64,000 bases of DNA. Origin: Takakia lepidozioides (Eukaryota; Plantae; Bryophyta). The number at the start of each line of letters is the position of its first letter. Positions within the stretch are counted from its first letter, which is position 1. Made by a program: the position numbers and the translations under genes. The notes beneath the pieces were generated by a model. The model was not told the DNA's origin and did no database searches. It saw only the letters and a list, made by a program, of their open reading frames with translations. Shown piece after piece: positions 5,241 through 53,920 of the stretch. Location of the stretch: positions 63,054,001-63,118,000 of the forward strand of contig CM060731.1 in assembly GCA_030704615.1 (NCBI GenBank), given 5' to 3'.

Positions 5241-5861
5241 ATGGAGGCAAAAGCTAGAGACAAGGAGCAACGTGAACTGGTGCTGAAGGGAAGACATGAA
5301 GGAGGGTTAGATAGCATCCAAGAAATGGAGAAGAAACGTTTGCTGATGCGTACTGCTGTGAACCTGGCACTGCATCTAACCACTCCCCCAACCTCTGTAC
5401 CACAGCACCTGCAGTCGCGTGTGACTGCCAGTGAACAGCACCTGGCTGCACTGCAAGCTGAGTGGTGTGTTTGCTCACTCCGCTGTTTGTTACCATCTTC
5501 GAACATAAAATAAAATGTGTTATTTTTCATGACAGCTGCATCTCAGCACCTTTTGTCAATATCCCAAATGTATTCAATGACCAGGGTTGGTTGCCTCCGA
5601 ATGATTCTGAGTGACGCTTGGAGCATCGTGACGAGTTTTGGATGTCATGAATTATACATGACTGGGTTAATATATTGTCACAACTGAAGGTTAAGATGTG
5701 GGTCCATTAATGCAGGGATGCAGTGAGCAACCCTTGGAGGAGAAGAAGGCTGAGCTGGAGAAAATTGCTTTAAGTGGCAAAGGGGAGCTGCATGGGAAGC
5801 TATGGCACATTAAAGAAATGCAGCAGCAAATGAAGCCCTTGGGTACCCTGCCTTGTGTTAG
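5241..5861 (+). pseudogene. CCDC22: CCDC22 (DUF812 coiled-coil) middle exons, segment B
   Basis: Exon 5241-5464 (AG acceptor; MEAKARDKEQ...LAALQAEW) and exon 5716-5861 (DAV/QPLEEKKAELEK...CVR; GT donor), with a 1-bp deletion near 5727. Resembles the 'QWDDVRLTLETKK' region of plant CCDC22 and joins in phase to segments A and C. Confidence 0.75.
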
Positions 5862-6316
5862 GTAGGTGTTTAGTTCTGCTGTGTTCGTCTGTGGGGTCGC
5901 TCATTTGCTAGGAAATTTCCTTGATGTCCTATTTCTCTACCAGTTGTTTACCCATTTGAAGAGGGATTCGGACCGCACTGTACCACCGTGGCTACTCTCA
6001 TGCATATGTACTCAAACACCATGCTCTTGTCCAGCTAGAGCTGGAGAAGATTGCTTTAAGTGGCAAAGGGGAGCTGCATGGGAAGCTAAGGCACATTAAA
6101 GAAATGCGGCAGCAAATGAAGCACCCTGCCTTGTGTTAGGTAGGTTTTTAGTTCTGCTGTGTTCGTCAGTGGGGTAGCTCATTTGCTAGGAAATTTCCTT
6201 GATGTCCTATTTCTCTACCAGTTGTTTACCCATTTGAAGAGGGATTCGGACCGCACTGTACCACCGTGGCTACTCTCATGCATATGTACTCAAACACCAT
6301 GCTCTTGTCCAGCTAG
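5753..6316 (+). repeat. Tandem duplication (~280 bp) of a partial CCDC22 exon plus following intron
   Basis: 5753-6038 and 6039-6316 are near-identical (AGCTGGAGAA...GTCCAGCTAG), with small deletions in the second copy. Confidence 0.9.
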
Positions 6317-6544
6317 GCTCTGCCCCGACATATTTCTATACAAGGCCTACCCATCAACACCCTCCCCCCCACTTCCCCATCCCCACAACTCACCATACAC
6401 TTTATTGAATTCACATTTTGCCATGACCGCTACCGAAATGACTCGATTCTAGAGAAACGCCAAAAATATGCCCCGCTCATCCTCGCAATCCGAAGACGGG
6501 GCTGGAAAAAGTGAGCCAATTTCAAAAGATGTCAAGCTATGCAC

Positions 6545-8074
6545 CTTGTCAGCCTGTGCAATGAGGCTTGCCAACTGCTCTTGAAGCTGTGCACTGACCA
6601 GGGTGTGCGTCTTTGCTTGATGCTGTCTGTCACCCACCTGAGCAACTACTGCCGCACCCCAACTTTCTTCCTGACCTAAAAGATGGGATATTTCCAAAGC
6701 ACAGGAACTGGCACCAGCAGTTCCAGGGCCCCTGTCCAGTAGTAATACACCTTTACTGATCACTTTGTGTCTCCACTGTTTGACCTGTTGGGCAAGCTGA
6801 GCCAGCTCTGCATCTTCCAAGCCTTTTGATGTCTTCACATTCAGCTCCAGGAGAGCTGGAAGCAGCCATGCCCTGGGCTTTGCCTGCAGGAAAACCAATG
6901 CTGGCTTTTTCTGCGCTTTCCCTTCAACAGCCCTGGAAGTACTCAGCCGTAAGGAACAAGTTCTGAAAGGAACCCCTACATCACCTTCGTCCTTTGCTGA
7001 TGTGTGTGCGGAAGCATGTGAGTGCACCACCGCGTGCTGTACTGTCGCACTCAGTTGTCAAGGGTGGGGGCGGCGTGCCCTTTTCGTCCTCTAGCAGACG
7101 GCGTTGAAGATCTGGAGAGCTGGTCCAGCAGAAAGCGGAGCAGGCGGTGTGTGTTGCTGTGTGATGGGTAAAGGAACTGCAGCACGCATGTCATGTCACT
7201 TCCCTCTTTCTACTCCAATCTTTCCTGCTCCTGCATGCATGGCCACCTTCCCTCTCCCTTTCACTCTGTACCTCCATTACCTTACCATGAACTATTTGAC
7301 TCTACAGCCTCCACCACATGATGAGTGTCAAGGATTGAATCAAATCCAATCATGATATACCTGGACAGCGCTAAATCCAACCATTTCTTGCACATTTCCA
7401 ACATTGCAGTGGGTATGATCTCGATGCATATTCTCCAGGAATAAGCCCAAGCTGCAAAGCCTACCTATCTGATCAGCCTAGCATCTACTGCCAAACATTC
7501 CCGTTCATCTGTATCTCGCTATGGAGCTCACTGCGAACGCCCATATACTGCAGCTCCCAGTGGGAACCAATCTTCTACTAAAAAACTTCAGATGATGCTA
7601 TACAGGAAGGGAACAGCTGACCAACTGCGGACTACTACAGCTAAAGTCTGCCGACCATCAGCAGTTGACCGACTCATCATTGTGAAAGCCCATTGTCTTA
7701 CAACTGTCCACCTAATTGCAGAACAATTAGATACCAAGAGCTATCTCATGTTGACAGAGAATTCAACCCTCACAAACAGAAAGCAAATGCAGATACATTG
7801 GACACTGGCCTGATGGAAGCTCAGGTTACCCTGATAGCCAAGCTGCTTGATGTCCAATGCCAAATCCATACACACTCGAAAGCGCTCGGCTGTGCCTGAT
7901 GGAAGCCCGCTGGTGGGCGGCGAGGTGCTAGAGCCACGCATCAGCGCCACAGCCTGCTCGCATATGACCACCAAGGCATTGGGACCTACTTCATGTACAC
8001 CCTTGGCCTCCATCGGCACGTTCACCTCCGGCCTGCTGCAGAGCTACCAACATAATCTGCTGTGCATCATCCAT
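6545..8074 (-). pseudogene. CCDC22: CCDC22 5' exons, segment A (N-terminal NN-CH-like domain and linker)
   Basis: ATG at 8074: MDDAQQIMLVALQQAG/(+1 frameshift)VNVPMEAKGVHEVGPNALVVICEQAV...ERFRVCMDLALDIKQLGYQGNLSFHQ, then degraded LFPS..LKFLVE(R)L. Matches the CCDC22 N-terminus (ERFRICTDIA..VKNLGY...FLVERL). Last exon ends ...LIAQADK with a GT donor at 6544. Confidence 0.85.
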
Positions 8075-8364
8075 CCCTCTCTCTCTCTCTCTCTCTCTCA
8101 AACCCACCCACCCACCTATGAGCTATGCTGCAGGCAACCCTTAAATCGTGGAACGCCCTTGGGCAGAGGCTTAGCCTTCGCAGAAAGCTAACGGAAGAGA
8201 CACACAATTCTCCATGACAGACGGTTAGGAGATAATTTACTGAACATTTAGAGTAGCTTAGGCAACCTCAAGTAAGCACTACATTATGTTTTTTCTACGG
8301 TCAAGGGGCACTAGTGTAAAGTACCCTTGTGGCCATTGATACAAAGGGACAGAAACTATCTTTG

Positions 8365-8720
8365 TCAGGGGCTGACGCCCGTGGTATGACTTACTTTGTA
8401 ACAGACAATTGATTCCCAGTTTCCCAGATTTCCTCTAGAAATCCCTGTACACAAGCATCAATCTGCTGTGTGTGATTTGCCCAATAACTCGGCCCCAAAA
8501 GGGACTGGGCTTGCTCAGCCTTGAGATTTGAAGTTGGTAAACAGAGGTACAGGCACAAATCCGTTGATGGATTTGAACAGCATGTCTCTCCGGTGAGAGT
8601 ATCCAGGGGCCAGGAGTGAATCAGAAAATTAATCTTGTCTTCAGGTTGCCCACACAACAGGCATTTGCAATCCCCTTTTCCTCTCTGCATCTGTTTGTTA
8701 CTCAAAGGTAGGCTTCCCGC
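8365..8720 (-). mobile_element. Dispersed LINE 3'-end remnant (copy 1)
   Basis: Encodes CKCLLCGQPED..HSWP and AEQAQSLLGPSYWANHTQQIDACVQGFLEEIW; homologous to copies at ~46.1, 57.6 and 58.9 kb. Confidence 0.55.
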
Positions 8721-9389
8721 CCTGAGTGTGCCATAGAAATAGAAAGGGCTGGCTGAAGCAGTGGGGCTAGAATTGAGAAGGCCTGAGCCACAAACATGAT
8801 GGAACCAATGACGTGATCTGAGGCTAACAGCTCGAAATGACAATAAAGACAAATGAATTTGACAGATCATAATAAAAGCATGAAACAAAAAGGAAGCTAG
8901 TCTTCTGACCACTAAAACTAACCAGTAACAGTAGTCCACCAAGATGATTTCTCAGTATGAAATTTGCACAACAGTGCCTCGGTGAAACAACCTGAGCTAT
9001 TCAAGGTTGTCTTGATTCCAGGGCCGCATATTTATCCATGCGTACTAAGAAGATCAAGAAATTTCTTCATCAGTATACATATGCAAAACTGCTAGATTCA
9101 TTATCCTTTGACCAACCATGCTACAATGGCAAAAACAAGACAAATCCACTACCAGAATTTTTATCACCACCCACTCTGAAAAATTAAACCTCGCTTCATT
9201 GGCTCTTATGTTACAGAGGCATTGGATGTCTTGCTCCATTGGCATACTTCGCTGTGTTGCAGTTCCAAAACAGGAGTGGTGAAGAAATTCATCTTTCTCC
9301 AGTAGCTTCACATTCTTCTCTCTGACTGCACCATCACGTGACACTTGTGCAGTGCAGCCGATGGTCGAGAGTGTTAGCCCCGCCATACA

Positions 9390-12111
9390 TCAAGCCATGA
9401 GGTCTTCAGATTGTCCAAAGTAGCATCCAGCGATGGTGATCATCAAGTTAAGCATGTGGAGTTCTTCATCATCCACTGACTCCTTAGTTGCACGAAGCAT
9501 CGCACACCTAACAACGAGTTAACAACCCAACCTTTACAATCAGTGAGTTTGCAGAGCTAACTCCTCCTAGTTGGGTGAAAAGTCTCAAGAGGAGCCTCAG
9601 TACCTCTTTCACAGCACATGACGTCCTATTTGCAAGTTTCAGTGGTACTTTAGCTGGTATTGAGCACAGATACAACTTATTGAGAGACACGAAGCAAGGC
9701 ACACATTACTCGGATGACAACCTGACTTTCACCAGTCTATGCGTGAGATACTGTTGTACCTTCTCAACAGTGCCCGAAAAGCAGCACTTGTCTGTGCATC
9801 TAAAGGCTTGTCAACCACAGCAGAGAGAGCAAATAGCCACAGGGCACGCTCTCAAGGTAATCCCTCCAACCTTTCTAACCATGCCACATGGTAACGGAAG
9901 AGAGACGCACGTGAGACCTCATCCAAACTTAACATTATCCCCAGCAGTGGTGGCTTCGGAACTCTTGATTCACCAAACATATCTTCCACTTTGTGCCCTG
10001 TGGTGCTACTTGGATCGGCACTGGTGGTTTTGAAACTCCCACCTTCATTTCCAGTGATGCTCTTTGTACTCACTTCAGTACTCAACAATTCGGACCCGAC
10101 CCCTATCTCTGAACATCTGTATCTTTCTAAACCCAAATTGTTCATGTTCGTTGCTAACTCAACAGCTGCTTCTTCAGTCTCTGCCTGTAGCTCTATATCA
10201 AGGGCCATGTTCTCCGTGTTGTCAGTCTCATCTCCTGTAGAGGCCAAGGATTCTTCTTCTGGGGAGGTAGTAACCATGCCAAACGAGAAGGCCTCCCATT
10301 CTGCCTGGCTATGAGTGGAAGGTAGAGGGCCCACATCGCACGCAGGCAGCTGTTTGATGCTTAAGACAGCCTACAACACAAATGAAGGATACCTTCAGTA
10401 ACTGATGAGAGCAATGCTAGACTTCTTTAACCAGGGAGAGAACCTCAACTGATGGGAAGTATCCAACCAGAGTCTGGATACAACATTGCTCGAAGAAATG
10501 GAGCTCACCATCCGAAGGTCCGAGAAATCTGCTAGAAACATTCTCTCCCATTCCTTTGATGGAAGCAAATGAGGAGCGCAAGGAGTCACAGAGGAAATGG
10601 ATGGCATGTATGGGGTCTGTTCTGCTGAAAGCTTGCATGGGTCAATTTTAGCTACCTTCACTTTAGGACATTGTGCTGCCTCCCATCTGCTTACCACCCC
10701 CAATCACCAACCCCCATCACCAGTTAAACCATTAGCTAATCCACAGTGGTAAGAAGGGAGCTGCACTGCTTTCGGAGTATATATGCACTTCAGCACAAGT
10801 GACCACATATGATATAGTGTCATTCCGATTGATATCACTACCAATGAGAAATTAGAAATACACATCTCTCCCCTTCCTATTGACTTCCTGCCTGATGGTG
10901 TAACCACAGAAAAGCCAAAGAGGGAAGACATCAGAAGTATCAGAACCCCTAGGGATTACAGTGCAAACTCACACAAAGCCGAATAAAAACAGAGAAGGGA
11001 AGGTGGCAGGCAATGTGCCTGACATGGCGCAAATACTCCCAGCCATCTTGTGGGGGTCCTGACTCGAAGTCAGGCTCCCCCTCTACAGCAAATGCCCGGG
11101 GCTGAAAGTTTTCAATCTCATCATCACTATCCTCTTCATAAAGCTCTGATTCTGCCGCTGCCACCACCCCAGGATGAGAGCCACTATCATGCCCATGATC
11201 AAGAATTTTCTGATTGTTGGAGGACGCTGTCGCTTCGTAGCCCAACTCGTGATGAATGTCGCCATCTGCATGGCACACTGTTGGTAAACATCTCTCTCCC
11301 TTAAGACACCAAGCCCTGAAACCTCACTACCCAATGCCAAACGCAAGAACGCCTTCCTGTCCCAGTTCGACGGCAGTACAATAAGAAACCATACCAGGCT
11401 CACTAATGGACGCATTCAATTTCTTAGCCGGGCGCTGCCGCCTGTCCGCATTCTTGTGTCGAGTGTGCACAAGCCCCACATCTAGCTGGTAAAGCTCGTC
11501 GGCAACAGACCCTATCTCAGCCATCACTTCATCCCACCTTCCTGGCGTGTGATCCACCCTGCCACGCAACGCTTGCAGCTCCTCCTTACGATACTGCAAT
11601 CTTTGTTTCCCTTCCCCTGATCTCAGGAAATCTTCAGCGGTTGCGTCCATGGGAAACGATTCACTCAGACCCATGGCGGGTATCTTTGTAACAAGGCCCG
11701 CCATGTTTCCATGCAGCACCCTAATAAGCAGTTATGTCCAGAGCTTCGGATCAAGGCAGGAGAAGGCTGCTCCAAGACTTCGATATCACCTGGGGCAAGG
11801 GCGGCTTGCTCTGCACCCGTGCTTCCGACTCAATTGTTAAGTAATTGGAAGGACACCGTCCCCTCGCATTGGCAAGACCCCTGGTGGTGAGAGAGAGGAG
11901 GGTTTGGAAGGTGATTGTAACTGGAAACACAAACGGGCGAGGGATCCCAAATTCAAAGCCCAGCTTAAGTAGAGAATGATCCCTTGTCAAGAACTGCAGT
12001 CATCTCAGAAAATTTGCACGAAGGAAGATAGGGTGGGGAGCTGAACTTAACAGCAAGACATTTTTCCCCTTCTTCATCCTCTGCTTTTGCTGCTGCAGCT
12101 GCTCCAGACAT
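9390..12111 (-). pseudogene. GEMIN2: GEMIN2/SIP1 (SMN-interacting protein) pseudogene
   Basis: Exons encode RAFAVEGEPDFESGPPQDGWEYLRHVR|WEAAQCPKVKVAKID...FLADFSDLRM|...LP*ERALWLFALSAVVDKPLDAQTSAAFRALLR|CAMLRA..LNLMITIAGCYFGQ. In-frame TGA at 9852-9854; further stops and frameshifts in the long first exon. The 5' start is tentative. Confidence 0.85.
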
Positions 12112-13188: not shown

Positions 13189-16100
13189 TTATGTCTCTAG
13201 TGCAACTTCTTCCATCTCATGTCTCAAGAACTGCCATGGCCCTGTGGCCATTCCCAGCCTGCATACATAGGATATCACCTTATTTTTCAGAAGCACACAT
13301 ACAAAAACTTTTCACATTCCATATGGACTCACTCTTAACAAAACTTCCCTGGTTGAAAATCTGCCAAAAGCTTGGTCCTCTTCTTGGGTTTAATTTTCCA
13401 TGTGGCTCTTAGGTGCAATATCCTGAACCTAATAGATCAATCACCTTCTTTAAGTGAATCATTCTCGAGCATAGCCTGCACAGATTTATTTTTGAACAGA
13501 ATAATGGGTAGAGAGAGGCACCTCAAAAACCCAACCAGCATGCGGAGACTCATGACAAGTGTCAAACCAATCCACACAGATGCAAGGCCCCAAATATTAG
13601 GGAAAAACAGCAGAAACAGAGCCGAAGGAATTGAAAGCAGAATCTGCAAAAACCAAACCAATCAACCCCACAGTTGAAAAAGGATTGCACCAATTGGTGC
13701 CTAGTTTGAGTACACACAAAATACAGTAGCCAAAGACCAAGAACCCTAAGTAGACCATAAATGGTGTTTAATTAGCCTCTCTGCACTAACAGGATCCAAC
13801 AATTTACTGAACATACATATTGTCAAAAAGAGGTACATCCACGGGTATGCAAAGGTGGAAAGCCTCCTCACCATTGAGTAAGCTGCATATGCAAAGTCGG
13901 AGGCCCCATAATGAAGACCATCAAACACAAATGCTAGTGAGTTGATTGGTTGTGTAGCCGCTACAAACTGCATAATACCAACCACATTTAGGGGATAGGT
14001 TAAAAAGGACACTGAAGCCCAATACAAGACTGGCAAAGTTGAATGTTTCTGGGAAACTGGGTGGCTTGAAAATACACTGAAAGAACAGGTTTTCTGAACC
14101 ATCTCCTTAAGATGCCCCTCAAGCTGTCCAAGGTTCCATAAGCACCCCTCAAAGATTTTCGGCGTGTATGGCTGGACACCGTCATGCCTAATGAATCAAG
14201 GTAACTGTAATATAAAGACAGGCCAATTAGCGTATTGTACTCATATCAGACCATGATGGAGCAGAACCATACCGGAATAAGGAGTGCCATGACGTGCAAC
14301 ACACCAGCCTCCCTAGAAAACACTTGAGAAAAGGTAGGCATGCCCACTCCCAGGACCAGAGCCATGAGCAACCCAAACCCTAACCCTATCTGCACGTCAA
14401 AAGTACACATAGACTCCAAAGTAAGGCAAAGCAAACACAATCTCAGGAGTCTTAGATATCAGATATGCCTAAAGCAAATCATCCTCTCTGACCTATTATG
14501 CACTACTCTCGGGATTTTAACTCAGTGTCACAATAGGCATAAGCCTTCATTACCCACCCTTTACGTTACCAGATTCACATAGGAGTGCCAAACTAACATC
14601 TGCTCCCCAGAAATGGACAGCAGTCAACATTGGATATGAATGTTCAATTTATTGGTGCACGCAAGGTGGATACTGGACCTGTAAAACCCGAAAGGCAGCC
14701 TCTTTCACCCGTCTGTAGTCCTTTCTAGCGAAGGCACTCGCAATGATTGCCTGATGAAGTCACCCAAACCGTGGAAAGTTTAGCAAAAATACAAACAACA
14801 TGAAGCAGGATAGTGAGGTTCACTTTAGACTTAGACCTATATGCAAAGTCTTAAAGGGGGTTATCTTCCCAGCCCACTCTTACATGTCAATCTTTCATAG
14901 AAGCGTCGCCACTTCAACTAGATCTGGAAGTAAAGTCATATCATCAGATGAAGTAACCACATCATCTGCAGGTCAAACACACCTGCCCAGCAAGAGCCAG
15001 GGAGTCTGAAAGCAGAGATGACGCCAGCCAGATCTGCATACAGATTTGATGAGCAGCCATGGGTATGCTTCCTTGCCTTGCAGCCATGGATGTTGCCAAC
15101 GTCATGACCATAAGAATGGCAATTGTTCGCCCCAACAGATACCCACCTGTCATTCAAAATGGAACTATAACCAAGAATCTTTAGGACGTCACTACAGAAA
15201 GAAAAGAAAAAAGAAAGAAAACAAGACTTATCATGTTTGACGCAGAGTCTTTTCCACCCCCTCAGTCCCATGCATTCGCTGACAAATCATCCAGGAATAT
15301 ACAAAACTAGAGAAAACAGCATTCCATACCAGATTTCAAAAATCGGTCGAACCGCATATCACTCAGCCGAGGTGGTAGAAGTACAACTCGCCTGCTTAGA
15401 TTCCATAGAAGAAAGCCAGCAGCAGCATACCTGCAAAAAATGAAGCTCCGCTCAAACATGTGAAAACAAGATTGGAAAACCCTGCTCATCTAACCCATGA
15501 TGACAGATCTACAAGATCGAGGACATCCACCTGCTAAGCATGATAATTGTCGACTTACTGTGCAGCCACAGTTGCAACAGCAGCCCCGCTGACGCCAAAC
15601 TTCAGTGTGAAGATTAGAATTGGATCCAAAACAATGTTGACTAGGTTCCCCGCCACTGCCATTGCCACGAGCATACGATGTTCATACTAGTGCCAAAAGA
15701 TGCCAGTTTTTACTTCAAGAACCCAATCCAACCACATAATATTCTCATTCTGTTCCACTTCGAAGTAGATGGGAAAAGACATGGGAAAGGTTTAACTTGC
15801 TTACAACTGGCGTACAACGGAGTCTTGGTGTCCTTGAACCCCCTAAATATTCCCTGGGTGGCAAGTGCTACCACCACAGCTGGGGCACCAACAGCGCGCA
15901 ATGTCAGATATTGGATAGCTGGCATGCGCATTGATGATGTCTGCTCTCCACCCCAAACCATGTCAACACCCATAGGCCAGAAACTACATGACAGAAACTT
16001 GTTTCTTGACTGAAATGGGCAACCCCTCCAATAATGAAAAGCTCGCCTAGCACCATGGATTAGTGGATGTGATAAAGTTGGCTCTTGCAATAAAGACCAA

Positions 16101-18095
16101 TTCAATGGAGTCATCTATGTAAATGGATGTGGTCTATCAAGCAGAATTTGGTTTAAGATGGATTGCTATCTGCTTTAGGTCTTCCCGTGCAGGTGTAGAT
16201 TACGCACATGATAGCCTAAAGGAACTGGATGTAGCTGGTAGCCCATCATAAACATCATTAAAAGAAAAACATTGACAATTTCCGCAATATTAAGAAGCCA
16301 TACGCTTCAACTTCAAGAGCCTCTACACTGTTCAGCAGCAAGTTAGGGTCCCTTTCTTGCAGATGACCATTCCTGGTAGTTTCTGATATTATGGTCTGAA
16401 AACTGGTAACTTCCTCTTCGTTAACATTCTAGAACAAGAACACAATTAAGATACCTCTTACCGCATCTACGCCCATGATAGTCAACACAGGCTCTCCTAA
16501 AAAAGCCAACACACATGCTTCCCCCACCCCAAGCAAAGTTCCAAGGACTAGGGCCGATGATGCTGATGGAATAAGTAGCTTTTCTGGTTTTCTTCTCTGT
16601 GCTCCTAAGCTTTGAGGTTCCTCTTCCTTCATATCAGCACCTGGGATATTTACGAACCCATGATCCCCATAGTTATGACTTAGCTGTGCACACACTGTTC
16701 ACCAGACATTAAGATACACACAGACAGCCAAAAATCATCACCTATACTAGGGTACCCGAAGTCATCGTACAAAACTCTGACATGACAGTCCAAATACCAA
16801 CAGAAAGGCTTAGAAGGCACACAGAGCAAAGAGGCAAGTATGGCATCTTACGCCATTTGTGAAGACGCACAACAAAGAGGCAAATATGAAAACTCAAGCA
16901 ATCTGTGTTGCACATTCTGACAAGCTTACCTTCCAGTGAAAGCAATGAAGCAGAAGTGGGTGAGGTGGGCTCCAAGGGTATGCCATCAACAACATCTTTC
17001 TCAGAAGCATCTTCAGCCACAAACGATGTTGTTATATTCAGGAGAGGAAGGTTGAACATCTTGGACACCAGATTAAATATCGCGATAGAGACACCCACCG
17101 CTGCCTGCTGCACTGGACCTTTAAACAGTACAACTCACAAGTTCAGTCTCTAAATCCAACAGCACTTGAATCCCCTTGCTAATGACTAGTAATAATAGGA
17201 GTTTAGATGACTCTCTAAGACACCATGCAAGTTTCCACTAAACAGACACATCTCCTGGTGAGGTTGTCCATGTGTCATAGGGACATCTACAGGTACCCTT
17301 CAATTGCAGGAAAAACTGAAGCCTGCGCAGTGAAACCATAGAGGTCCAAGGCTCAGGAAGAGCACCATACAAGGTAAGACAATTGCCCTCCCACTCAGAA
17401 GTATGAAACACAAACCCATACACCTACTATGCCCAAAAGCTGTATGCGCTCCCAACTACCCTAAGGAGTAGCAGGACAACATCCAGCAGTCAGATGGCGA
17501 AGTCGCAGTGGTAGAGAGCAACTTTCATCAGGGCTTCCTCTCTCCTCTACATGGAAATCCAGCAAGCACAAAAATGCTCTGCTTTCTGAACTTGAAAAGG
17601 CTGGAGTACCTATGCGCCCAATGAAAGCAGTGTCCACCAAAGAGGCAAGGGGGTCCGCTGCCAGGGCTAACATCGCTGGCAGTGCAATTACTGCAATCTC
17701 CACACCAAGTTCATCTGCCCTGAATGCATGTCTGAAAGAAAACATAGTGAATATGTAGCACATATGTCAAGGAGAATCCATCATTACATCCGTGAAAGAT
17801 AATCTATCTGTTACACTGGTAACATTTTTTCTTTGCAGCAACAGTGTGGCCTATGTCAGCTGTCCCCAAAGACTTGACACCCACTGGCAGTCTGTGATAA
17901 CCCATCCGGCAATGCAATACAGCAAACTAGACACGAAAACTAAATGCCCAGCACTTAAATCACTAAAACCCTAGTATTAAGGGGAACCGACCGAAAGTAC
18001 CTGGCATTTTCAAACAAACCTCGCAAAGGCTTCCCTCCTTTATTGACCATAAGTAATCTCTCAGTTTCACTTCCAGAAGTCGAGCGTGAACCCAT
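13189..18095 (-). CDS. MATE/DTX efflux transporter (FRD3/DTX42-47-like clade), 13 coding exons, apparently intact
   Basis: Phase-consistent GT-AG exons: IALPAMLALAADPLASLVDTAFIGRIG, PLLNITTSFVAED, QGIFRGFKDTKTPLY, GNLVNIVLDPILIF, AAHQICMQIWLASSLLSDSLALAGQ, TQPINSLAFVFDGLHYGASDF, RLGMATGPWQFL...TAA at 13189. No disablement found on manual splicing. Confidence 0.92.
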
Positions 18096-18139: not shown

Positions 18140-20160
18140 GTACAGGACGCTTCAGAATATTCTAATTTCTTCAAAGACTGCCATCACTTCTGATACCACT
18201 AAGGTCCCGAAGTGGATGAGAACAGCCACACCCCCCTCTCGTCACATTCAACCAGACTGCAGAGGATAGTTTGAGACCAAGTCCATACAGCCTTCATGTT
18301 GACCTAGAAAAGGTATCTTAAAAAATTCATCTCATAATTGTTTTATTTATAACAAATCTGTTTTTTCAGATTATCTCGGCTGGTATTTGGTTCTATGCGT
18401 CCTCTTGGCACCCTGGCTCTGCTCACATCAACGAGGTTAAGCGCCAGCTTAGGAATTTTGTATGGGGAGCAGAAAATTCCTTGGAGGCAGATCTGCCTCC
18501 CAAAGAAGAAAGGGGGATTGGGAATCCTCGATCCAGAAACACAAATCACCGCGCTTCTTGGGAAATGGATCCCCAGGTTGCTGGGACCAGAGGGTGGCTG
18601 GTGGAAAAGCCTGATCAATGAAAGTATTTTTAATGCTTCGCCACTCAAAAATGCAGCATGGAACCCTCACTGCGGTGGATCACACAGGGTTTCAAACACA
18701 AAACAGTGGGCTCGTCACTCTGGTCAAACATCTGGCAAGGGGGCAAGTTACGCCAGTTCCTTACCAAGTCTCAACCCTCCATCCTTAGATAGCACATATT
18801 CCTTAATTCCAGCAGGCCCAACATTTTCCAGAGGAACAATGCTACTAGATGGTCGACATGGGACCAAAGAGGCAATAATCAGATCAACAACATCTGGGTA
18901 AATAATGGAATCAGATCCCTGGATTCTATTTCTGCAGCAGTGGGTAAAACCAGGGCAGCTCGCGGGTACAATGAGCTTCTCCAATCCCTAGACCCTCAAT
19001 GGTTAGCAAACACTCCAAATGGGACCTCCTCCTCCAGCTGACAATCAATGGGCACTTGTTCTGCTGAGGGGCATCCTCACTGTTTTGTTCGTCGCAGACT
19101 GTTCCCCCCAGAGTTATATACCGCTTACCCTTTCAGTATAGACACCACAACCCTCGCTCTCTCTTTGCTCTCTCATCGGCCAATCAATATCCAGCCCACC
19201 CCCCTGACCCCGATCAGGGTTTGGCAATGGTCCTCCAAGGATAAAGGCTTCAACCCACTCCCTCCCCTCACCTCTCCTCTCTCACTTTGGCTCGCATCAA
19301 ATACCTTTGTCTGGATACTGGGCAGACCCTTGGCAGAGCTGGAAATCGATCCTATGGAGTGGTCCTGGCAGTTCTCCAGATCACAAGACCCTTTCTTCAC
19401 CTACACAACAAAAAAAGCCTATAAAGATCTTTCCAACCCTCAACCTATAAAAGCGAAATGGGAGGCTAGGTGGGACCTGCAGGGGTTTCACGATGAGAAT
19501 TGGGATGCCATCTGGAGCTCCGTCTGGCTCAAATCTCGCTCTGCGAAGATTTCCGCATTCCTCTGGCGGGTTGTGGACAGAGTTATCAAGGTTGGAGAGT
19601 GGTTGCAATTCCAAACGGCCATTCTTTGTACTTGCTGTTCGTCGGGGATCATTGAGTCAATAGAACACTGCCTAATCACATGTCATGGACCAGCACAGGT
19701 GTGGCCCTAAAGTTAAGGCCTTCAATCTTAACTGGAACAGCAGATCGCTCTCCACATCAGACCTGCCACTAAACTATGGTAGACATACCAGGGCCAGATC
19801 TCTCTGTTGTCCAGTATTTGAGACACTCAGAGGCTCAACGTTGTGGCATCTTTGGAAAGTGAGGTGCAAAAAAAATTCTCTGAAAATTCAGTGACAGTCA
19901 GCTCTCTCCTCACCAATTATAATCTTGGTGTTGAATCAAGAAAAATGTGGGCCAAAACGTGTGCAGACATCCAGCGGCATCCGGAGAAAAATGGGTCATC
20001 TGTCAATCCTCCTCGCTCCACCACTGCAATTGGAATCCTCCCTCCCCCATCTCAAGCATCTCAAGCCTTCCACAGTTGCCTGGAGACTTCACTACAGATA
20101 CAGTCTGCCCCGAATAAATGTTACCTCTATAAACCTTAAACTACCATAAATGTTAAGAAA
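18140..20160 (+). mobile_element. Degenerate L1-type LINE ORF2 3' part (post-RT, zf-RVT), with a small opposite-strand endonuclease-like piece at ~18170-18300
   Basis: KIPWRQICLPKKKGGLGILDP..ALLGKW; WSSVW..SAKISAFLWR..CTCC..ESIEHCLITC; multiple frameshifts. The minus strand at ~18200-18290 reads RGGVAVLI (weak). Confidence 0.85.
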
Positions 20161-24860: not shown

Positions 24861-24863
24861 ATT

Positions 24864-30591: not shown

Positions 30592-30602
30592 AGTCTCGCC
30601 AA
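30592..30602 (-). promoter_or_regulatory. Self-priming primer-binding site
   Basis: Minus-strand TTGGCGAGACT is the exact complement of AGTCTCGCCAA located inside the LTR (30883-30893), about 25 nt downstream of the TATA box. Confidence 0.75.
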
Positions 30603-30604
30603 AC

Positions 30605-38396: not shown

Positions 38397-40416
38397 GATG
38401 GTAATGACAGCAGAGTCCTACACAATTAACACTGATCTCCCTACGTACTCCATCTTTGAAAGTACCAAGAAATGAAAAGAACGAGTTATTCGTTTGAGAT
38501 GGATTTCAGACAAGAACTCCGTACGTAAAACATACCTCGCTGACCAAAGGAAAAGGAAAACTATGCCTCTTGGTCCGAATTGGGCACGGGGTTTGCTGTT
38601 TCCAATTTAAATTTTAAACTCTATCGCTCTCCACATCCCTCACCTCCAATGATGGTTGGAAAACGCGTACCAGCTTCAGGACGATTATGCGTTAAGACAT
38701 TGGAAACCGATTTCCGCAGGAGGAGTAACAAAGAACCGCAATCCCTTGTCCTTGAGCTCCAGGGATGCACAGACGGGAAAATCTACATGCACAGGAACGG
38801 TATTACCACTTCAGTAGAGAAGATCAGAAACGAAGGTCCAACCAGAAATTAAGAACATGAACGGAATCTCCTCACAGGTGTCCATCGACGGTCTCCAGCC
38901 CCTTCACCAAAATCGCAGGAAACATCTCTGCGGAAGTCCAGGCAACTTGTCTCCTGAGTCTCTGTACGAAGACTCTCTCTCAACACTGGTGGGTCCCAAC
39001 AGGCAATCACGTCTACCATAACTGGGAGCTGCCACTGCGCGTGAAGTTCCAAATTCCAGAGAAACTGGAGTCCCCAAAACCGGTGATTCAAATATAACGT
39101 GGACTAACACACCATGTGCGAGGATACTACAGAGACAGACCTGTAGACGTACACGCCTATCACCACACCTGCGAGATCATGAGGCCATCTCACCTCATTC
39201 GTCTCTCTCTCTGTTTGGGTTCTTGCAAAATAATGTCTTCCCCAGTGGAAGAATCACAGCAGAGCCCAAAAGAGGAAAAGAGATGGTACGAGCTTATGCA
39301 GCACTACTTGGCTATGGCTGCCGGATACCACAGAGGTAATGGAGCCATTTCGCAAGAAAGACAAAAGATTTTCCGTGGCTAAACTGAACTCTTCAATGGC
39401 TAAAGTACAGTACCAAACCAGCTAACTAATCTTCTTACTAATCACCTCAGTTAGCCGCTAATGAACCCTAAGTATCATTAGGGCAGCGCCAAACCACAGA
39501 CAGCTATGGCCCCACGCGTGCGGCCCAGTTGTGGCAGAGACGAGCGAGGACGTGGATGCTCGTTCTTCCTCGATGCTGCGGGTTCTTTGATGAGCGATGC
39601 TGAGCGAGGCAGAAACAATAGAAGCACATGGACCATTCATTGATGATGGAGGAGAGATGGTTGAGCATGAATGATAGAGGCAGTGAAGGACGTACTTACC
39701 TACCTACGAGAATAATGAAGCAAGGATCGATTGCGAAGATCGTCGCTTGTGAGGGGTTGCAGGTCAATAGATATCCAGCTGTGCCTCGGTTCTCGAGCTT
39801 TGGAAAGGTTTTTTCAAGTCTCCGCTCTGTCTCGCCAAGGCCTGCCGCCTACGCTGAGTAGTGGAGATTTCAGTAAACCCTAAAATTTCGTCTCTTTCTT
39901 TATTTGTCCCTGGAGGGACGGCCAGAATGATAAGGTAGTGCGGTGACTTTTCCAACAACCGAGGTGGTCCCGACTCCCAACAAGCGCGTGGGGTTGGGCT
40001 TTTGGATGGATGGAGACATGAGCAGACATTCCGTGCCGACACGATAGGACTGACATCTTCCCTTTGGCACCTAGTGCCGAGAGCTACTAAGAGGTGGGAG
40101 TATTTTGTCAAGTATTGTCAGGTGTGACACCCTGGAATTGAGTTATTATTGAAACTTCTGTTCACGAACTTCGTTTTGGCGTGGGGCACCGGCTTGTTAT
40201 GCTCGTGAGATCTTCATCTTAATTGAAGGAGGACAAACTCTCCTGAATGCCTTGCACAGGAGCGGCAGTCATCAAATTGTTGAGAATGAGAATGTAGTGT
40301 GTTAGGTTGGGCCAGAAGCTTCAGGCGATCCCACGATGTTTATAATATTTGCTTAGAGATACACGCAGGTAGAGTGCGGGTGACACACAAACGCTGCGTG
40401 TTTAGGTTGTCGGAGA

Positions 40417-44683: not shown

Positions 44684-44716
<33 letters not shown>

Positions 44717-47700
44717 GAAGGAGGAGGGCAAGGAGGATGAACCCACAGTCCTCAGAAAGTACTGCTCACATCTTTGTACCGTTGTATAATAGTTGTGGGC
44801 AGGAATGTTCTTATGCTGTATATGGCATATTGAAAGTGATTAACTATAGGACCAATTGTAACACAGATACACATTAATTTTCTGCTGTTCTGAGCAGCTT
44901 TTCCCTGAAAATTCTTTTTACACCGCGAGCTGGCCTTTCCTATTGCATATATGTAAACTATCCAACAGTACCTTGTGACTGAAATGGGTTGCTTTTGAAA
45001 ACACGCTCTACAGTGTCTAGGGTCTTCTCCTTAGTGTGGAACACCTGTATCCCATGTCTCACAGGAAGGGTGTTTCCGGAAGGTGCTGAGACTGAAAACC
45101 AACAACATTCATTTCTATCCAGTGACATTACTCTCTCGGTCACTTAAGTCCTTAGGTTATAAATGGGATCACCCCAGAACATAGTTTGTAATCTATAAAC
45201 TTGGCTCACAACTGAGCAATCCTCACTCAGAAGATGTTAGTGGAACATGCTGAGTGCAGCCTAACAAGTAGAAAGTGGCCAAGGTAACCCACCTTCTGGG
45301 AAAAACAAGCCCCAATAAAAGATGGAGTAAGAGTTCCCAATCACTAGCACCTTGAGTGATGGAGGGCTGAGAGCATGACGCTGACAAGCATTTAATGGCA
45401 AAGTCGGACGAAGCTCACATAGCTAGCTAGAAACCAAGCCAAGAATCCAAGTTGCATTTGCTCCAGAATGCAGCCATAACCAGCACAGCTACTCTTTTGA
45501 TCCATGTAACCTGTCATGGGGTGAGAATTGCATAACCTAACAGGTTTTCACACAACGCAATGGGCATTTGGGTCCTCGGTCTCTCTTAAACTAAGAGGGC
45601 CTTGGCTGTGTTCTTGTCTACCCTCAGGATAGCTTTCCTGATTTTGTCTGTGAATGCTTTGAACTCCTCTCCTGCTTCTGCCCTGCACACAACCCAGAGT
45701 GACAGGTAGAGACTAGAGACCTTCCCATTTCTGTGGTAAACACAGGGCTATCAAACTAAAATCAATAACTCTGCAACGGGGCTGTCAAGTTTGCATGTGG
45801 ACAAGTGCCTCTGTGAGTGCCTTAATGGCAGTTGCAGGAAAATAAGTTTATACCTGTAGCTGAGCTGTAGGGATAACCTAAAACCTGGTTGCGAACCCCA
45901 CAGTAGGCTCCGGGAGGGTAAGTTTCCTGTGGGGTCAATGGCCACAAGGCTATGACAAGCCCAGCCAACGTTCGCAGGGAACAGCTCTTTGCGAGCCCCC
46001 TCATAAAGGTAGTTTCTGGTCCCTTTTGTTCCTCCCAAACTGGGCAGGGGGTCTATGTGGCTACGGCAAACAATGTCTTATGAGTACATTCTCAATCTCT
46101 TTTCAAGACCTTGAGGCTGAGCCTAAAGCCCTGGCCCTGTTGGGGTCTAACTTTTGGGCTGCTCACACACAGCAGATTGTTGCTTGTGTGAAGGGCTTTC
46201 TAGAGGATATCTGGAAAGCCTGAACTAATTGTTTATATCAAGGTAAGTCCCACAACTGGAGTGAGCCCCTCACAAACGTAGTGTCTATTCCCTCTGTTTC
46301 TGTCCAAACTGGGCGTGGGGTCTATGGCCACAAGGCTACGGCAAACAAAGTCTTATGAGTACAGTCTCTCTCAAGAGGAGGGTCGCATAAGGCTTTCAAT
46401 ATGACTGGACCAGAGAGTGTGTAGGAGGGCTCTCCTCTGGAAGCAGCCACTCCCTTCCTGTCTCAGTCCAAGGTGATAGTTGCTGGGAGTTGTAGAGAGG
46501 GCTTGGAGAGTTTGGTCCAAGGGTGGAGACTCTGTTCCTTTGCCAGAATACTGAGAGTCTCAAGACGATTGTGCCTATGAGCCTCCACTCAAGGCCAGTC
46601 TGTGGGTAGTGATTTGATGTCAATCCATGTGTCTCAAGGAAACATCATCTAGTAAGGTCCATCAGGTCATCATTTGGGAGAGAGCAATTTGTATATCTTC
46701 GTCTCCAGGAATTTGGGACTCCTAGGGACTCCCAATGAACGAACACACATGGTCAGACCGATCAGTTGGTGCATGGACTGTGTGGCTCTCTGTCGAGGGA
46801 CACAACAGGTCTCTGCGATATCTTATGTTAAGACACTGTTCAACTGAAGTACAAGGCCTTAAGTTGCAAACACTAGAAGTATTTGCAACATACATGCATG
46901 AGAAGTATGTTTGGCAGGAACGAAGTGAGTCCATCAAAGCTTTAATCTGGAAATCTAATTTGAAGTGGGTCTTTTGATCTCATGAGTCCTTGAGGCTTGC
47001 AGACAGACATACAAAAACAATCTTCTTCTCTCCCTACCTGTGGGTTGGAGGGGGTACTATGGGTGCAAGCAAGCAAAGTCCAATGCATACAACTCTCATT
47101 ACTCTGCTCTCTTCTACACAATTTGGCGCTCTTGTCTATGTTGTTCACCTCTTTTGTTATCGCAATCTTTATATCCAAGTGTCTTCTACTTTTCCCGATA
47201 TGATCATCTGTCTGTTCATCGGCTGTTATTTGTATCCATTTCAACCTTCTTGTCTTCCTCTTACTCTTCATACAGGAGGGCAGCCCAGCTGCAACAGGCA
47301 GTGGCAGAAGAGAGAGCTCATGTACAACGAGCAAACTCATACAATGCAAAACTCATCGAAAATCTGGCCAATGAGAAAAAGGAACGGGCCTCCTTAGACA
47401 AAAAGGTTGCTGAGCTTGAAAAAGAGCGAGCGAAGCTGCATCAAGAGGTTCATTCTCTCAGGGGCTTGCTCTATACATCTATACTACCTAAACCGATTAC
47501 CCTTGGTCCTAGTGTTGTACTGGCTGTAGACTATACCTTGATTCAACCACTTCTAGGTACTTCACTAGTTCATCAAAGGTTGTGAAGAAGCTCAGAGTAA
47601 GTTTCAAGGTGGACTTCAGCTGGCTCATTTTTAGCATCATTCCTATGCGGCCTTTAGCCAGATAACCTGGACTGCCTTCTCTAGGTGGTTTGTTCCTTAG

Positions 47701-48594: not shown

Positions 48595-48709
48595 GTAGTT
48601 CTTATTTGACCCACATAGACTGAACAAACTTTTTGACCCTGCCATCTTATCAGGAAGGTTGTACTGCTAAATAAGATAGAATGTGTTGAAGAAGGTGCTT
48701 TCGTTAGCA

Positions 48710-50320
48710 GTATCCGGAAACTTGAATGACAACTGCAGATCTATTGCGGGCCAGACCAGAACCTCTTATAAATGTTTATGGATATGGAGGCTACATATCT
48801 TCATCACCCTACTTGTAATGGATCCACCAAGCCATAGCCCACCCAAACTGGAGCAGTTGGCAAGAAGATAGACCCATTGGAGTACCTACACGTCCATAAA
48901 CTTGAACAACAAGTGCAGATCTGTTGGGGGCCAGACCACAACCCCTTAAGAAAACTCCAAAGCTCTAGAGGCCACCATACATTTATCACACTAGTTGTTA
49001 GAAATGTGCCAAGCCATAGCACACCACAAATGGAAGAATTGGCAAGAAGATAGGCATATCAAAGTACTTGAACGTCCGGAAACTTGGACAACAAGTGCAG
49101 ATCTATTGGGGGCCAGACCACAACCCCTTAAGAAAATTCAGAGCTCAGTAGGCCACCATAACTTGATCACACTAGCTGTTAGAAATGTGTCAAGCCATAG
49201 CACACCACAATTGGAGCAATTGGCAAGAACATAGGTCCATTTGAGTACTTGAACATCCGGAAACTTGAACAACAAATGCAAATCTGTTGGGGGCCACACC
49301 ACAACCCCTGAAATCTCTAGAGGCCATAATATATTGATCATACTAGTTGTGAGAAATTCTCCAAGCCATAGCACACCACAATTGGAGCAATTTGCAAGGA
49401 GATAGGCCCATCTGAATATAAGTTGAAAGTCCGGAAACTTAAACAACAAGTGCAGATCTGTTGGGGGCCAGACCACAACCTCTTAAGAAAATTGAGAGCT
49501 CAGGAGGCCACCATAACTTGATTACACTAGTTGTTAGAAATGTTTCAAGCCATAGCACACCACAACTAGAGCAATTGGCAAGGAGATAGGCTCAGCTGAG
49601 TACCTAAAGGTCCGGAAACTTGAACAACAAATGCAGATCTGTTGGGGGCCAGACCACAACCCCTTAAGAAAATTCAGAACTTAGAAGGCCACCATAACTT
49701 GACCACACTTGTTAAAAATATTTCAAGCCATAGCACACCACAACTGGAGCAATTGCCAAGGAGATAGGCCCATCTATGATCTGAGTACCTGAACGTCCGA
49801 AAACTTGAACGACAAGTGCAGATTTGTTGGGGGCCAGACCACAACCCACCTTAATAAGATTCAGAGCTCAGGAGGCCACCATACCTTGATCATATTAGTT
49901 GTTATAAATGTTTCAAGCCATAACACACCATATTTGGGGCAATTGGCAAGAAGAGAGGCTAATTTGAGTACCTAAACGTCTGGAAACTTGAACAACAAGT
50001 ATAGATTTGTTGGGGCGATCACAACCCCTTAAGAAATTTCAAAGCTCTGAAGGCCATCATATTTTGATCACACTACTTGTTAGAAATGTGCCAAGCCATA
50101 GCACACCACAAATGGAGGAATTGGCAAGAAGATAGGCCCATCAAAGTAGCTGAATGTCTGGAAACTTGAACAACAAGTGCAACTATACTGGGGGCCAGAC
50201 CACAACCCCTTGAAAATCTTTATGGCTCTGAAGGCTAGCACATCTTCATCACCCTACTTGCTACAAATCCACCAAGCCATAGCACACCCAAATTGGAAAA
50301 ATTGGCATGAAGATATGGCA
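48710..50320 (+). repeat. Tandem array, ~9 units of ~175-185 bp
   Basis: GAAACTTGAACAACAAGTGCAGATCTGTTGGGGGCCAGACCACAACCCC...CAAGCCATAGCACACCACAA recurs at ~48717, 48898, 49079, 49260, 49435, 49615, 49800, 49984 and 50161. Confidence 0.95.
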
Positions 50321-51774
50321 CAACAGAAATGAATGTGACTCTGTCTGGCTTCACCCCCTGCTGATGTGCATTTGCTCACAGGTCTCCAAAGCCTCTATCC
50401 CCCATATTCATGTTGTACATGTCATGCAATCATAGCATTCCAGAACACCACATCTCGTTTGTCCATCAAACAATTCATTTGCATCCACAGTGCTCCCACA
50501 TTTGGCATACATATCAATGTCAAGAGTATTGTTCAGAATGACATCTGGTACTATTCCAGCCTTGACGATGTCACCATGGACCTCTTTTCCCTTTCATGAA
50601 TATATAAATGGCTGAGCCCTAGAATACTACTTCCTGGCAATGGTGCCCCTAAAGAACCGGCAACAGATGACCCAAACCTCGAGCGACCTACTGCAGCAAA
50701 AACATGAGAAATGAAGAGGGTGGGAACGAAATTGATGGAGAGTTGGAGAGCGTTTGGGCGTGGATTAAGGAGAGCAGACAAGTGAAAGAAAGATGGGATA
50801 GAGAGGAGGGTGGAGAGGATGATATTGAGGGCCGTATGAAAAAGCTAGGAAGCTGTCGAGCTTCAACCCTCCCCGCATCGATTGCGCGCATGTCTCCAAA
50901 ACTGTCGAGCTCAACCCTCCCCTCATCGCTTGAACGCATGTGGTCTCCAAAGCTTCCATCTCGGACCCTAGCTATGCATCTGCAAATCATCCCACGACAC
51001 AAACAAAGAAAAACGACCAAGTCCAAGACTCATCGTTCAGCACACAACCCCGCAACCCTAAATCCATTTTAAATTATTTTGAACTTTTATTGGATAGTAC
51101 ACTTTTTGTTACCCCAGTGGTTTGGGGCTCAAATCCTGCTATGTCCTTTTTATATGTGGTACGGTATGTGAATTTCACTTTATTGTAATGATACAATGTT
51201 AACTTTTTTTATGAAGTGATAAAGGCAGGCCAAGATGAACTAATTAATATGACCAAATTTAAATTATGCATGTTTGGCCATATCCGGGTCATATGAAACC
51301 TGTTTGACGTAGTTTTTGGGGGGATAGTTTCAGGGCTTACAATGCTACCCACCTACACCTCATTTTTGGGCTCTTGCAAAAAGTCTATAGATTTTTCCAA
51401 AGTATATTAGATTATCTATTTTTTTAAATAAAAAATAAAGGGAAACACCTAAGAGCTACAACTCATAAATCAGGCTTATCTACTAGATGTGACATATGAA
51501 AATTTGAATGAAATGTAAACAACTATTGTCAAGCCTTGTAGTGAGTTCAGTTATTTGGAAATTTTGTATTTTTGGAACTGACTTAATTTATTTTCATTCT
51601 AAAATTCATCGTTGAAGTTTGGACATTGGAGAAAATGCAAATTTTGATGGTCTACGGGCACCCTCTACCTTATCAGATCAGCCCATACCTAGGTCATTAG
51701 ATGGTGCCACGGCTCTAAGTGGAGAAGAGCTGGCTATGTTATATTTCAAGCTAATTTTGTATTACCAAACATTG

Positions 51775-52320
51775 TTCCAGTTGAGGAAAGTGCTTCAGAG
51801 AATGAATACTGTGATTCAGATTCAGAGTAACGTTGATTGTTTGGAACCATCTGTTCAATAGCATCATCCTACAATGATTTGGACACTTGTATGCTTTTTA
51901 AAGTCTGCCACAGGTGCACAAACCACTTTAACATTTTCATGTATCACCACAAGAGTAGTACTAGTCACTGAGGTGTCTTTAATCACTCACAATCTACCAC
52001 CGTCCAAAGTGATACCAATCACTGCAGTGTCTTTAACCACTCACTATGTACCACTGTCCAAGGTGTCTTTAACCATATAACATTCTAGAACTAACATGAG
52101 AGACTGAAGACCTAGCTATGTTGTCTACATGCATTCAAGCGGCGTTTGTACAACCAACCGCTATTCCAGTTGAGGAAAGCCATTCAGAGGATGACGAATA
52201 TGTTTCAGATTCAAAATAAAGTTTATTGTTGGAACCATTTGTTCAATAGCATTATCCTACAAATGGTCTGGACACTTGTCTGTTTTTCAAAGTTTGTCAC
52301 AGGTGCACAAACCACTTAAA
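51775..52320 (+). repeat. Diverged ~160-bp direct repeat pair
   Basis: TTCCAGTTGAGGAAAG...CACAGGTGCACAAACCACTT at ~51775-51930 and ~52165-52318. Confidence 0.75.
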
Positions 52321-52337
52321 GTTTAGGGTTTAAACTA

Positions 52338-52552
52338 CATGTCTTTGAAGTCATGACGTATAGGTCCTGGAGGTACATAGAGAAGTCCCTTGAAGTAAAG
52401 TAAACCATCTTTGAATTCGAAATCGTTTGTAACATGTGGGTGGTCTTGAAGTTGGTTCAGTTGACTTCGTAGTGTTTTAGCAAATTGGTTGCTCTTCAGT
52501 GCTTCCTGAATCTCCTTTATGATCTCTGCATCGTCATAGGTGGACATGGATA
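52338..52552 (-). mobile_element. Short pol fragment of the same chromovirus family
   Basis: MSTYDDAEIIKEIQEALKSNQFAKTLRSQLN..FEFKDGLLYFKGLLYVPPGP; near-identical to ~27290-27510. Confidence 0.9.
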
Positions 52553-52751
52553 GCAGAGAGAGAAGACGCCGGTCATGGCCGGCGAAACTAAGAGCCACTT
52601 CGCCTTGCGGCTACTGCCCCCTTTCGGGGGTGGGCCCTATATAACAAAGGGAGTGCCCTGAGGGGCACCCAGTGTCCATTGAATATGGGGGAGATAGTGG
52701 TACCCGTGGGTACCCAGGGGTACTCTGGGAGGCCTAGGGGGTACTTGGGGT

Positions 52752-52870
52752 GCCGGATTCAAGCTGACATTTGTTGGTAATGATAGCTATGAGTGAGCGG
52801 AGCGCCGTGAGCCGGATTCAAGCTGGCGTTTGTTGGTAATGATAGTTGTGAGTGAGCGGAGCACCGTGAG
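52752..52870 (+). repeat. 59-bp tandem direct repeat within an unclassified GC-richer repeat fragment
   Basis: GCCGGATTCAAGCTG(A/G)C(A/G)TTTGTTGGTAATGATAG...GAGTGAGCGGAGC(G/A)CCGTGA occurs twice. Confidence 0.8.
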
Positions 52871-53182
52871 ATGAATTTCTTTTGAAGCATTTGTGGATGG
52901 GTAGGATGGGGATTTGGAAATTATCGTGTATACTGTTAATACGTGTATACTGTTAATGTTAATACTGGCATTATGAATGCCTCCTCGGGTACCGACGGTA
53001 AGTGGATGGGTGCTCCGGTGCTCAGTAAAATGTAGTTAGTGGAAGTTTATGTGTAATCAGTGGATATGTAAGTGTATGTTGTTTAAGGTATTTGCGAGGA
53101 GAGAACAATCAAGGCTTCTGGATATGAGTTTTCCAGTTTTTGGTTTTTGTAGCGGCTGAAGTTGGTTTGGGATTCATGACAG

Positions 53183-53920
53183 GGAGGAAGAGATATGGAT
53201 AATAAGGACTGAAGTGGAGGGGGAAGGGAATGTAGCAAAACGGTCTTCCTATGTGCATCGCATCACTGAGCTGGTGCGCAATAGTAAAAAACAGGCTATT
53301 GACATTGCATGCATCATTCTCAACACCCGCCATTTGCAGCGTGACAGCAATGCCGCTCACGACCGCCTTCGTCGCACGCACGCTCTTGTGGATGAGCTTG
53401 TCTTCAGGTTTCATTCTCTCCTTGTTGAGCATACAAGACTGGAGCATTGGTTTTTATGCAAATTAAACTAGCCAATCTCGTAGTACAATCTGCCTGAAAA
53501 TGGGACTTTTCTCCATGTCAGGGTGAAATCACTCCACAACTTGTGGCACTTCAAACCAAAACCACATCTATAAACTGACAACTTTTGTGTCGTTGCAAAA
53601 TCGCCTATTGCATATGAAGCTGAAGTGCCATTACATTTGTTGACAGGGATGCAAAGTGGGATACAGTTTGTCGACAGCCATACAGGTCACTTAGCACCAT
53701 CCATGAAACATTTGCAGACATTGTGGATGGGGTATTTGAAATGGACAAAATAGGTAGAGAGATTGCAGAACTGCAAGCCATGTTAGAAGATCTACAGAAG
53801 TCGCCAGTAGATATAACCAGTGTGCAGTCAGATCTGCATGCCATCATGGCGGAGAATCAAATCTTGGAGAAGGGACTTGCAGAGGTGCTTGCTCTGCAAC
53901 AAGGACTTGCAGACATGTAA
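53183..53920 (+). pseudogene. CCDC22: CCDC22 3' exons, segment C (two exons to the stop codon)
   Basis: Exon 53183-53407 EEEI..AKRSSYVHRITELVRNSKKQAIDI..TRHLQRDSNAAHDRLRRTHALVDELVFR; exon 53647-53920 DAKWDTVCRQPYRSLSTIHETF..REIAELQ..QSDLHAIMAEN..TAA. This is the diagnostic DUF812 C-terminus; no adjacent 5' exons. Confidence 0.9.

Follow-up and report, generated by a model that had tools for sequence, protein, structure and literature searches.

Three scattered pieces of CCDC22 in Takakia lepidozioides, a probable rearranged duplicate of a transcribed gene

What has become of a gene whose exons lie in three blocks, on both strands and some 48 kb apart? The question is raised by CCDC22, an endosome-sorting gene whose product is a subunit of the CCC/Commander complex, in a stretch of 64,000 nucleotides (nt) from Takakia lepidozioides (assembly GCA_030704615.1, contig CM060731.1, positions 63,054,001–63,118,000). 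This stretch, called the window below, is plant nuclear DNA; it is free of Ns, and all positions are counted from its first letter. The original prediction, made from the letters of the window, recognised three pieces, A, B and C, which together would give one non-overlapping and nearly complete CCDC22 protein, and proposed that a rearrangement had scattered them and destroyed the gene. We find it very probable that these pieces are a non-functional, rearranged duplicate of CCDC22, a gene of six exons, the spliced RNA being that of a second copy in which the gene is unbroken.

The pieces were identified in homology searches that used single exons as queries. In Pfam, the family CCDC22_N (PF21674) matched at 7744–8043(−) with an E-value of 4.3e-11, and CCDC22_CC (PF05667, positions 358–477) matched at 53160–53468(+) and 53624–53917(+) with E-values of 1e-17 and 7e-8. 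Exon 5 also matched human CCDC22 in the PDB (residues 469–545 of 8f2u_T, from a structure of the Commander complex). Unlike the exons with Pfam or PDB matches, exons 2–4 were matched only through bryophyte homologues, using tblastn. These were obtained with exon 5 alone, which recovered full-length plant homologues from a search of protein representatives, and they were then placed on the window by tblastn. The full-length Ceratodon homologue (P0004, 584 residues) was placed as follows.

Residues 1–27: 8074–7994, minus strand
Residues 17–87: 8025–7810, minus strand
Residues 87–123: 7179–7069, minus strand
Residues 136–295: 7057–6536, minus strand
Residues 293–368: 5241–5465, plus strand
Residues 373–408: 5728–5835, plus strand
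Residues 417–492: 53181–53408, plus strand
Residues 489–574: 53636–53893, plus strand

The Sphagnum homologue P0166 gave the same tiling order over its residues 1–609, and the only other CCDC22-like tblastn match in the window was a partial copy of exon 4 at 6038–6124. Bryophyte CCDC22 proteins thus tile across the pieces in order and without overlap, and this colinearity in both Ceratodon and Sphagnum, together with the Pfam and PDB matches, bears out the assignment made originally: A, B and C exist as described, complement one another, lack essentially nothing of the gene, and make up one six-exon CCDC22. The nearest CCDC22 proteins are those of Sphagnum, at ~60% identity, with none closer in the search of representatives or in a word search with P0004.

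In Sphagnum and Riccia, CCDC22 has six exons with boundaries near residues 100, 327, 401, 450 and 525, and the window pieces end at these same boundaries, A comprising exons 1–2, B exons 3–4 and C exons 5–6. As the two species share the same six exons, the breaks in the window fall in introns 2 and 4. The parts of the gene are listed here with the evidence that places them.

8074–6545, minus strand: piece A, exons 1–2
5241–5861, plus strand: piece B, exons 3–4
53183–53920, plus strand: piece C, exons 5–6
7810–8074, minus strand: exon 1, with the ATG at 8074 and CCDC22_N (Pfam, tblastn, translation)
7177–7809, minus strand: intron 1, GC..AG in the window copy (RNA joint 7176–7810)
6545–7176, minus strand: exon 2 (tblastn, RNA contigs)
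6509–6544, minus strand: A-side stub of the broken intron 2, donor GT at 6544–6543 (second-copy DNA contigs)
5146–5240, plus strand: B-side stub of the broken intron 2, acceptor AG at 5239–5240 (second-copy DNA contigs)
5241–5464, plus strand: exon 3 (tblastn, RNA contigs)
5465–5715: intron 3, canonical GT..AG
5716–5861, plus strand: exon 4 (tblastn, DNA and RNA contigs)
5862–5968, plus strand: B-side stub of the broken intron 4 (second-copy DNA contig)
53183–53407, plus strand: exon 5, CCDC22_CC, open (Pfam, PDB, tblastn)
53647–53920, plus strand: exon 6 with the TAA stop codon, open (Pfam, tblastn)

The splice sites first proposed for the pieces were correct, since in RNA contigs 6545 is spliced to 5241 and the donor region at 5861 is in use. 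Introns 1, 3 and 5 and the stubs of introns 2 and 4 are kept in the window copy, at positions common to Sphagnum and Riccia, and the window copy is therefore not a retro-copy. The RNA contigs also contain a second acceptor for intron 1, at 7229 (joint 7229–7809), beside that at 7176, suggesting that the live copy is alternatively spliced. Elsewhere in the family, the Ceratodon purpureus homologue is a single uninterrupted open reading frame (ORF) of 1755 nt (L001:10001–11755), as opposed to the six exons of Sphagnum and Riccia; the contrast suggests that, in this moss lineage, the gene either lost all of its introns or was replaced by a retro-copy.

Whether the scattered exons can still give rise to a messenger was addressed with contigs from four public sequencing runs of the same species, compared with the window over 4400–8600. 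Two of the runs, X1 and X4, are DNA from one sample, and the other two, X5 and X6, were guessed to be RNA; the contigs of X5 and X6 lack the introns and so represent spliced RNA. In the DNA, CCDC22 occurs in two forms at equal depth (19.4 and 21.4 in X1; 70.7 and 60.9 in X4). One is the window form, for which a contig over 5043–5474 matches without a single difference and bridges the left joint at 5145/5146. The second form differs from it by 24 letters and 2 gaps over 5146–5474 and, in the DNA contigs, joins position 5146 directly to 6509, which lie on opposite strands in the window. Its intron 2 is accordingly uninterrupted, with a length of ~131 nt (6544–6509 followed by 5146–5240). Two RNA contigs from X5 and X6, of 1624 and 1553 nt, run through 7179–6545(−), 5241–5465(+) and 5727–5866(+) and then continue for ~590–620 nt beyond the compared stretch, a length that fits exons 5–6 (499 nt) and a 3′ untranslated region.

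These contigs link exon 2 to exon 3, the A–B junction by which trans-splicing of the window pieces had been expected to be recognised, and the persistence of the splice sites would have allowed such joining. The junction was thus found, but its letters are those of the other copy: at all diagnostic sites among the best-supported differences listed, the RNA carries the second form's letter, and the depth of that letter is the whole depth at each site. It follows that the messenger is transcribed from the intact copy, and the second copy, with its intact intron 2, is the only form seen in the spliced RNA contigs. Given also that, in DNA, intron 2 of this copy is a normal one of 131 nt, and that the window copy bears three frameshifts, we regard it as extremely improbable that trans-splicing of the scattered pieces still yields CCDC22.

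The frameshifts are as follows. In exon 1, an extra base at 8027, lacking in the second DNA copy and in all of the RNA contigs, leads in translation to a stop after codon 27. In exon 2, the tblastn alignments with Ceratodon and Sphagnum change frame near 7057–7069 (at ~7060), where one base is missing. Exon 2 of the window copy is moreover 21 nt shorter than that of the expressed copy; gap letters number 22 in the RNA contig (6545–7179) and 21 in the DNA contig (6509–6890), and the difference between the 22 letters and the 21-nt DNA indel points to the single-base deletion. Exon 4 lacks a G after 5726 that both the second copy and the RNA possess, in agreement with a change of frame in tblastn. 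The difference at 8027 is found on about half of the DNA depth and that at 5726 on about a quarter, to which the nearby tandem copy may add; being present on only part of the depth, both are true features of one copy and not slips of the assembly. No intact ORF for CCDC22 can be read in the window, with a stop after codon 27, three changes of frame and exons on two strands. The window copy is a non-functional duplicated pseudogene. The frameshifts that had been noted in A and B were therefore well founded, being seen in window-type DNA contigs and not in the expressed copy, and so was the preference for a dead gene over a trans-spliced one. The term gene-destroying rearrangement holds for the window copy but not for CCDC22 itself, which has not been lost, an intact and expressed second copy being present at equal DNA depth.

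The second copy also allows the joints of the rearrangement to be read. The true joints are at 5145/5146, 5968/5969 and 6508/6509. The break in intron 2 is exact to the base, 6509 and 5146 being neighbours in the intact copy, and a second-copy DNA contig matches 5698–5968 and continues with 124 nt unlike the window. Between B and A the order is the intron 4 stub, then a fragment of a repeat, here called R, and then the inverted stub of intron 2. The elements at the joints are these.

6247–6508, unstranded: fragment R, 262 nt of a high-copy repeat at the B–A joint (read depth)
5752–6316, plus strand: tandem duplication with a unit of 286 bp, first unit 5752–6037 and second copy 6038–6316
2265–5073, plus strand: hAT-like element with DUF659 ORFs and inverted subterminal repeats (arms at ~2265 and ~5073)

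Over 6340–6508 at least, R has a depth of ~1400 compared with ~20 for a single copy; its other genomic copies diverge around 6339, where it has a loose end. No Pfam family was found in R, nor in the flanking ORFs, and the window holds no further copy of it, although its first 69 nt recur at 5969–6037 through the tandem duplication. The latter spans the end of exon 4, the intron 4 stub and the start of R, and has microhomology at its edge. Its units differ by 5 substitutions and one 8-nt indel, and it is later than the joining of B to A. The junction originally placed at 6316/6317 is merely the end of this duplication; the real B–A joint is R, between 5968 and 6509.

Leftward of 5146, the hAT-like element is separated from the joint by 72 nt of low-copy sequence. 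None of the joints coincides with a transposon terminus or bears a terminal repeat or target-site duplication; the arms of the hAT-like element, from which alone its termini were defined, end at ~5073 and the joint is at 5145/5146. Nor were inverted repeats found at the breakpoints: the inverted pairs of the window, I1–I4, lie elsewhere, and the junction regions share no inverted match of at least 10 nt beyond chance. Terminal inverted or direct repeats linking the junction regions were likewise absent, apart from chance 10-mers.

The B–A joint, with a high-copy repeat and a tandem duplication, is of a kind that is hard to assemble, and the DNA runs may come from the assembly's own sample, so that the pieces might in principle have been mis-joined by the assembler. 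We consider this very unlikely. A k-mer contig identical to the window crosses 5145/5146 at single-copy depth, the reads contain the window-type variants, frameshifts among them, and the window is without Ns.

Several points do weigh against a rearranged, non-functional duplicate as we describe it. The reads cover 4400–8600, and it is from complementarity that C is assigned to the same copy as A and B and that the C-side break is positioned. For the window form, neither 5968/5969 nor 6508/6509 is crossed by any of the listed contigs. Contigs drop rare variants, and the data are thus compatible with transcription of the window copy at a low level. If the DNA of X1 and X4 is that of the assembly's own sample, it is not a fully independent witness.

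The relation between the two forms can be judged from their divergence, which is patchy and ranges from 0 to 7%. It amounts to ~7% over 5146–5474 and exon 4 and to ~5% over 6971–7121, and is near zero over 6509–6970, 7150–7470 and much of intron 1, where the two forms collapse into common contigs of doubled depth. Such a mosaic, as read from the sequences, is suggestive of gene conversion between the live gene and its dead duplicate. Equal depth and long identical stretches in the A block would also be expected if the two forms were alleles on homologous chromosomes, the rearrangement then being a heterozygous structural variant, and the left flank at 4765–5030 likewise occurs in two forms at equal depth. 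However, ~7% over exons 3–4 and the intron stub is far above the usual allelic level, and the closest relatives of the window sequence are mosses, in which the sequenced plant body is normally haploid. We therefore consider an allele unlikely, and the second form is likely to be a paralogue or homeologue, a divergence of ~7% being too high for ordinary alleles. The stretch 4765–5030 is the low-copy end of the hAT-like element, with 9 differences over 266 nt between its two forms; the duplication from which the second CCDC22 copy arose may thus reach past the gene.

As to how the rearranged duplicate arose, the observations show that a single DNA molecule was cut in introns 2 and 4 and its pieces put together again in another order and orientation. 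Exons 3–4 now stand to the left of the inverted exons 1–2, with the 262-nt repeat fragment as filler in the joint, and exons 5–6 are found 45 kb away on the plus strand. The 286-bp tandem duplication at the joint followed, and three single-nucleotide indels broke the frame of exons 1, 2 and 4. Since the joints have neither inverted repeats nor transposon ends, the pieces were probably united by end-joining that took in filler. The exact cut in intron 2 argues against an independent capture of three fragments.

The path by which the pieces reached their places depends on the surroundings of the gene, which are given here.

9855–11323, minus strand: GEMIN2/SIP1, upstream of A and co-oriented with it (Pfam)
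15713–16114, minus strand: MatE, a weak match (Pfam)
19042–19707: LINE fragment
24864–31207, minus strand: full-length gypsy element with gag, reverse transcriptase (RT), RNase H, integrase and long terminal repeats 85–96% alike (24864–25413 and 30605–31207)
34113–34478, plus strand: eIF4E
37539–38417, minus strand: PAP2 lipid phosphatase (LPP)
52356–52559, minus strand: gypsy fragment to the left of C, linker before integrase, 79% identical in amino acids to the gypsy element at 27311–27514
54020–54515, minus strand: gypsy fragment directly after the 3′ end of C, RT thumb and RNase H, 28–35% identical in amino acids to the same reference element
62045–62419, plus strand: RALF

The earlier model was an inversion of ~47 kb whose breakpoints lay at L and within intron 4 and which carried GEMIN2, MATE, eIF4E and LPP with it, and a separate flip of B. 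These genes and their strands were confirmed; the path itself is one possibility. From an ancestral order L / X′ – exons 1–2 – exons 3–4 / exons 5–6, exons 3–4 would be flipped either by a second inversion or in the same three-break event. The model requires only three breaks, has GEMIN2 co-oriented and just upstream of A, and fits the orientations of A, B and C. Synteny gives it no support, however: in Ceratodon, Riccia and two species of Sphagnum, neither GEMIN2 nor RALF was found within 10 kb of CCDC22. It also lacks inverted repeats at its ends and leaves as a coincidence the near-abutting pol coordinates of the gypsy fragments that flank C. We hold this course to be a serious possibility, though short of an even chance.

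Those coordinates are explained by a local shatter, in which the gene lay on the minus strand beside GEMIN2, exons 3–6 were cut out, exons 3–4 were re-inserted flipped, and the block with exons 5–6 (~52560–54020) landed 47 kb off inside a gypsy fragment. The two gypsy pieces, 54020–54515(−) and 52356–52559(−), are on the same strand and only ~57 nt apart in the reference element (27572 versus 27514), and all three CCDC22 blocks are short and bordered by repeat fragments. Four breaks are required, however, and the gypsy pieces differ in their identity to the reference (28–35% versus 79% of amino acids) and may not be one element. This course is a tentative possibility, clearly less than even, and the two paths fit the observations about equally. 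It seems doubtful that the three or four breaks, the filler and the tandem duplication go back to one chromoplexy-like or template-switching event in the germ line, or that they express a genome-wide habit of killing spare copies by small inversions.

Other repeats were seen in the window. The interval between the coiled-coil gene and the C block contains a satellite-like array at 48698–50315, with ~9 units of ~181 nt that are 60–90% alike, and the gypsy fragment bordering C has a tandem-like duplication of ~389 nt immediately to its left, at 51745–52320 (76–86% alike). A dispersed repeat of very high copy number, with a read depth of up to several hundred thousand, occurs at 8338–8725, 46101–46367, 57612–57889 and 58845–59504; one of its copies is just upstream of the CCDC22 start codon and is inverted relative to the other three. 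The intronless LPP gene has no protein match above 53%.

In its general features, the window copy resembles duplicated, non-processed pseudogenes, with introns kept, an intact expressed partner, accumulating frameshifts and signs of gene conversion. It differs from them in that exon pairs have been reshuffled through several breaks over 48 kb, and not simply decayed by point mutation or deletion. End-joining repair with filler DNA is described for rearrangement junctions in plants in a review of T-DNA junctions (PMC8395108), and the joints described here are alike in having a 262-nt ectopic repeat between unrelated broken ends and no long homology; they differ in that the repair process is here deduced from its product, and the fragment could be a later insertion. 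With the CCDC22 of the CCC/Commander complex (human 8f2u), the window copy shares the domains CCDC22_N and CCDC22_CC and, over its full length, colinearity with the bryophyte homologues, but it cannot encode the protein. The object is thus of a known kind, unusual only in the legibility of its pieces and of one break.

In Arabidopsis, CCDC22 is reported to be needed for the growth of roots and root hairs (PMC9815543). In the plant studied here, the role of CCDC22 presumably rests with the intact second copy; the gene has not been lost from the plant, and no exotic joining of RNA is at work. For annotation, the pieces should be called neither as three genes nor as one trans-spliced gene. The locus is an example of a redundant gene copy dying by structural rearrangement in a bryophyte, with one breakpoint known to the base through its intact partner, and it would be of modest relevance to studies of genome evolution if small inversions were to prove a common route by which duplicates are lost in this genome.

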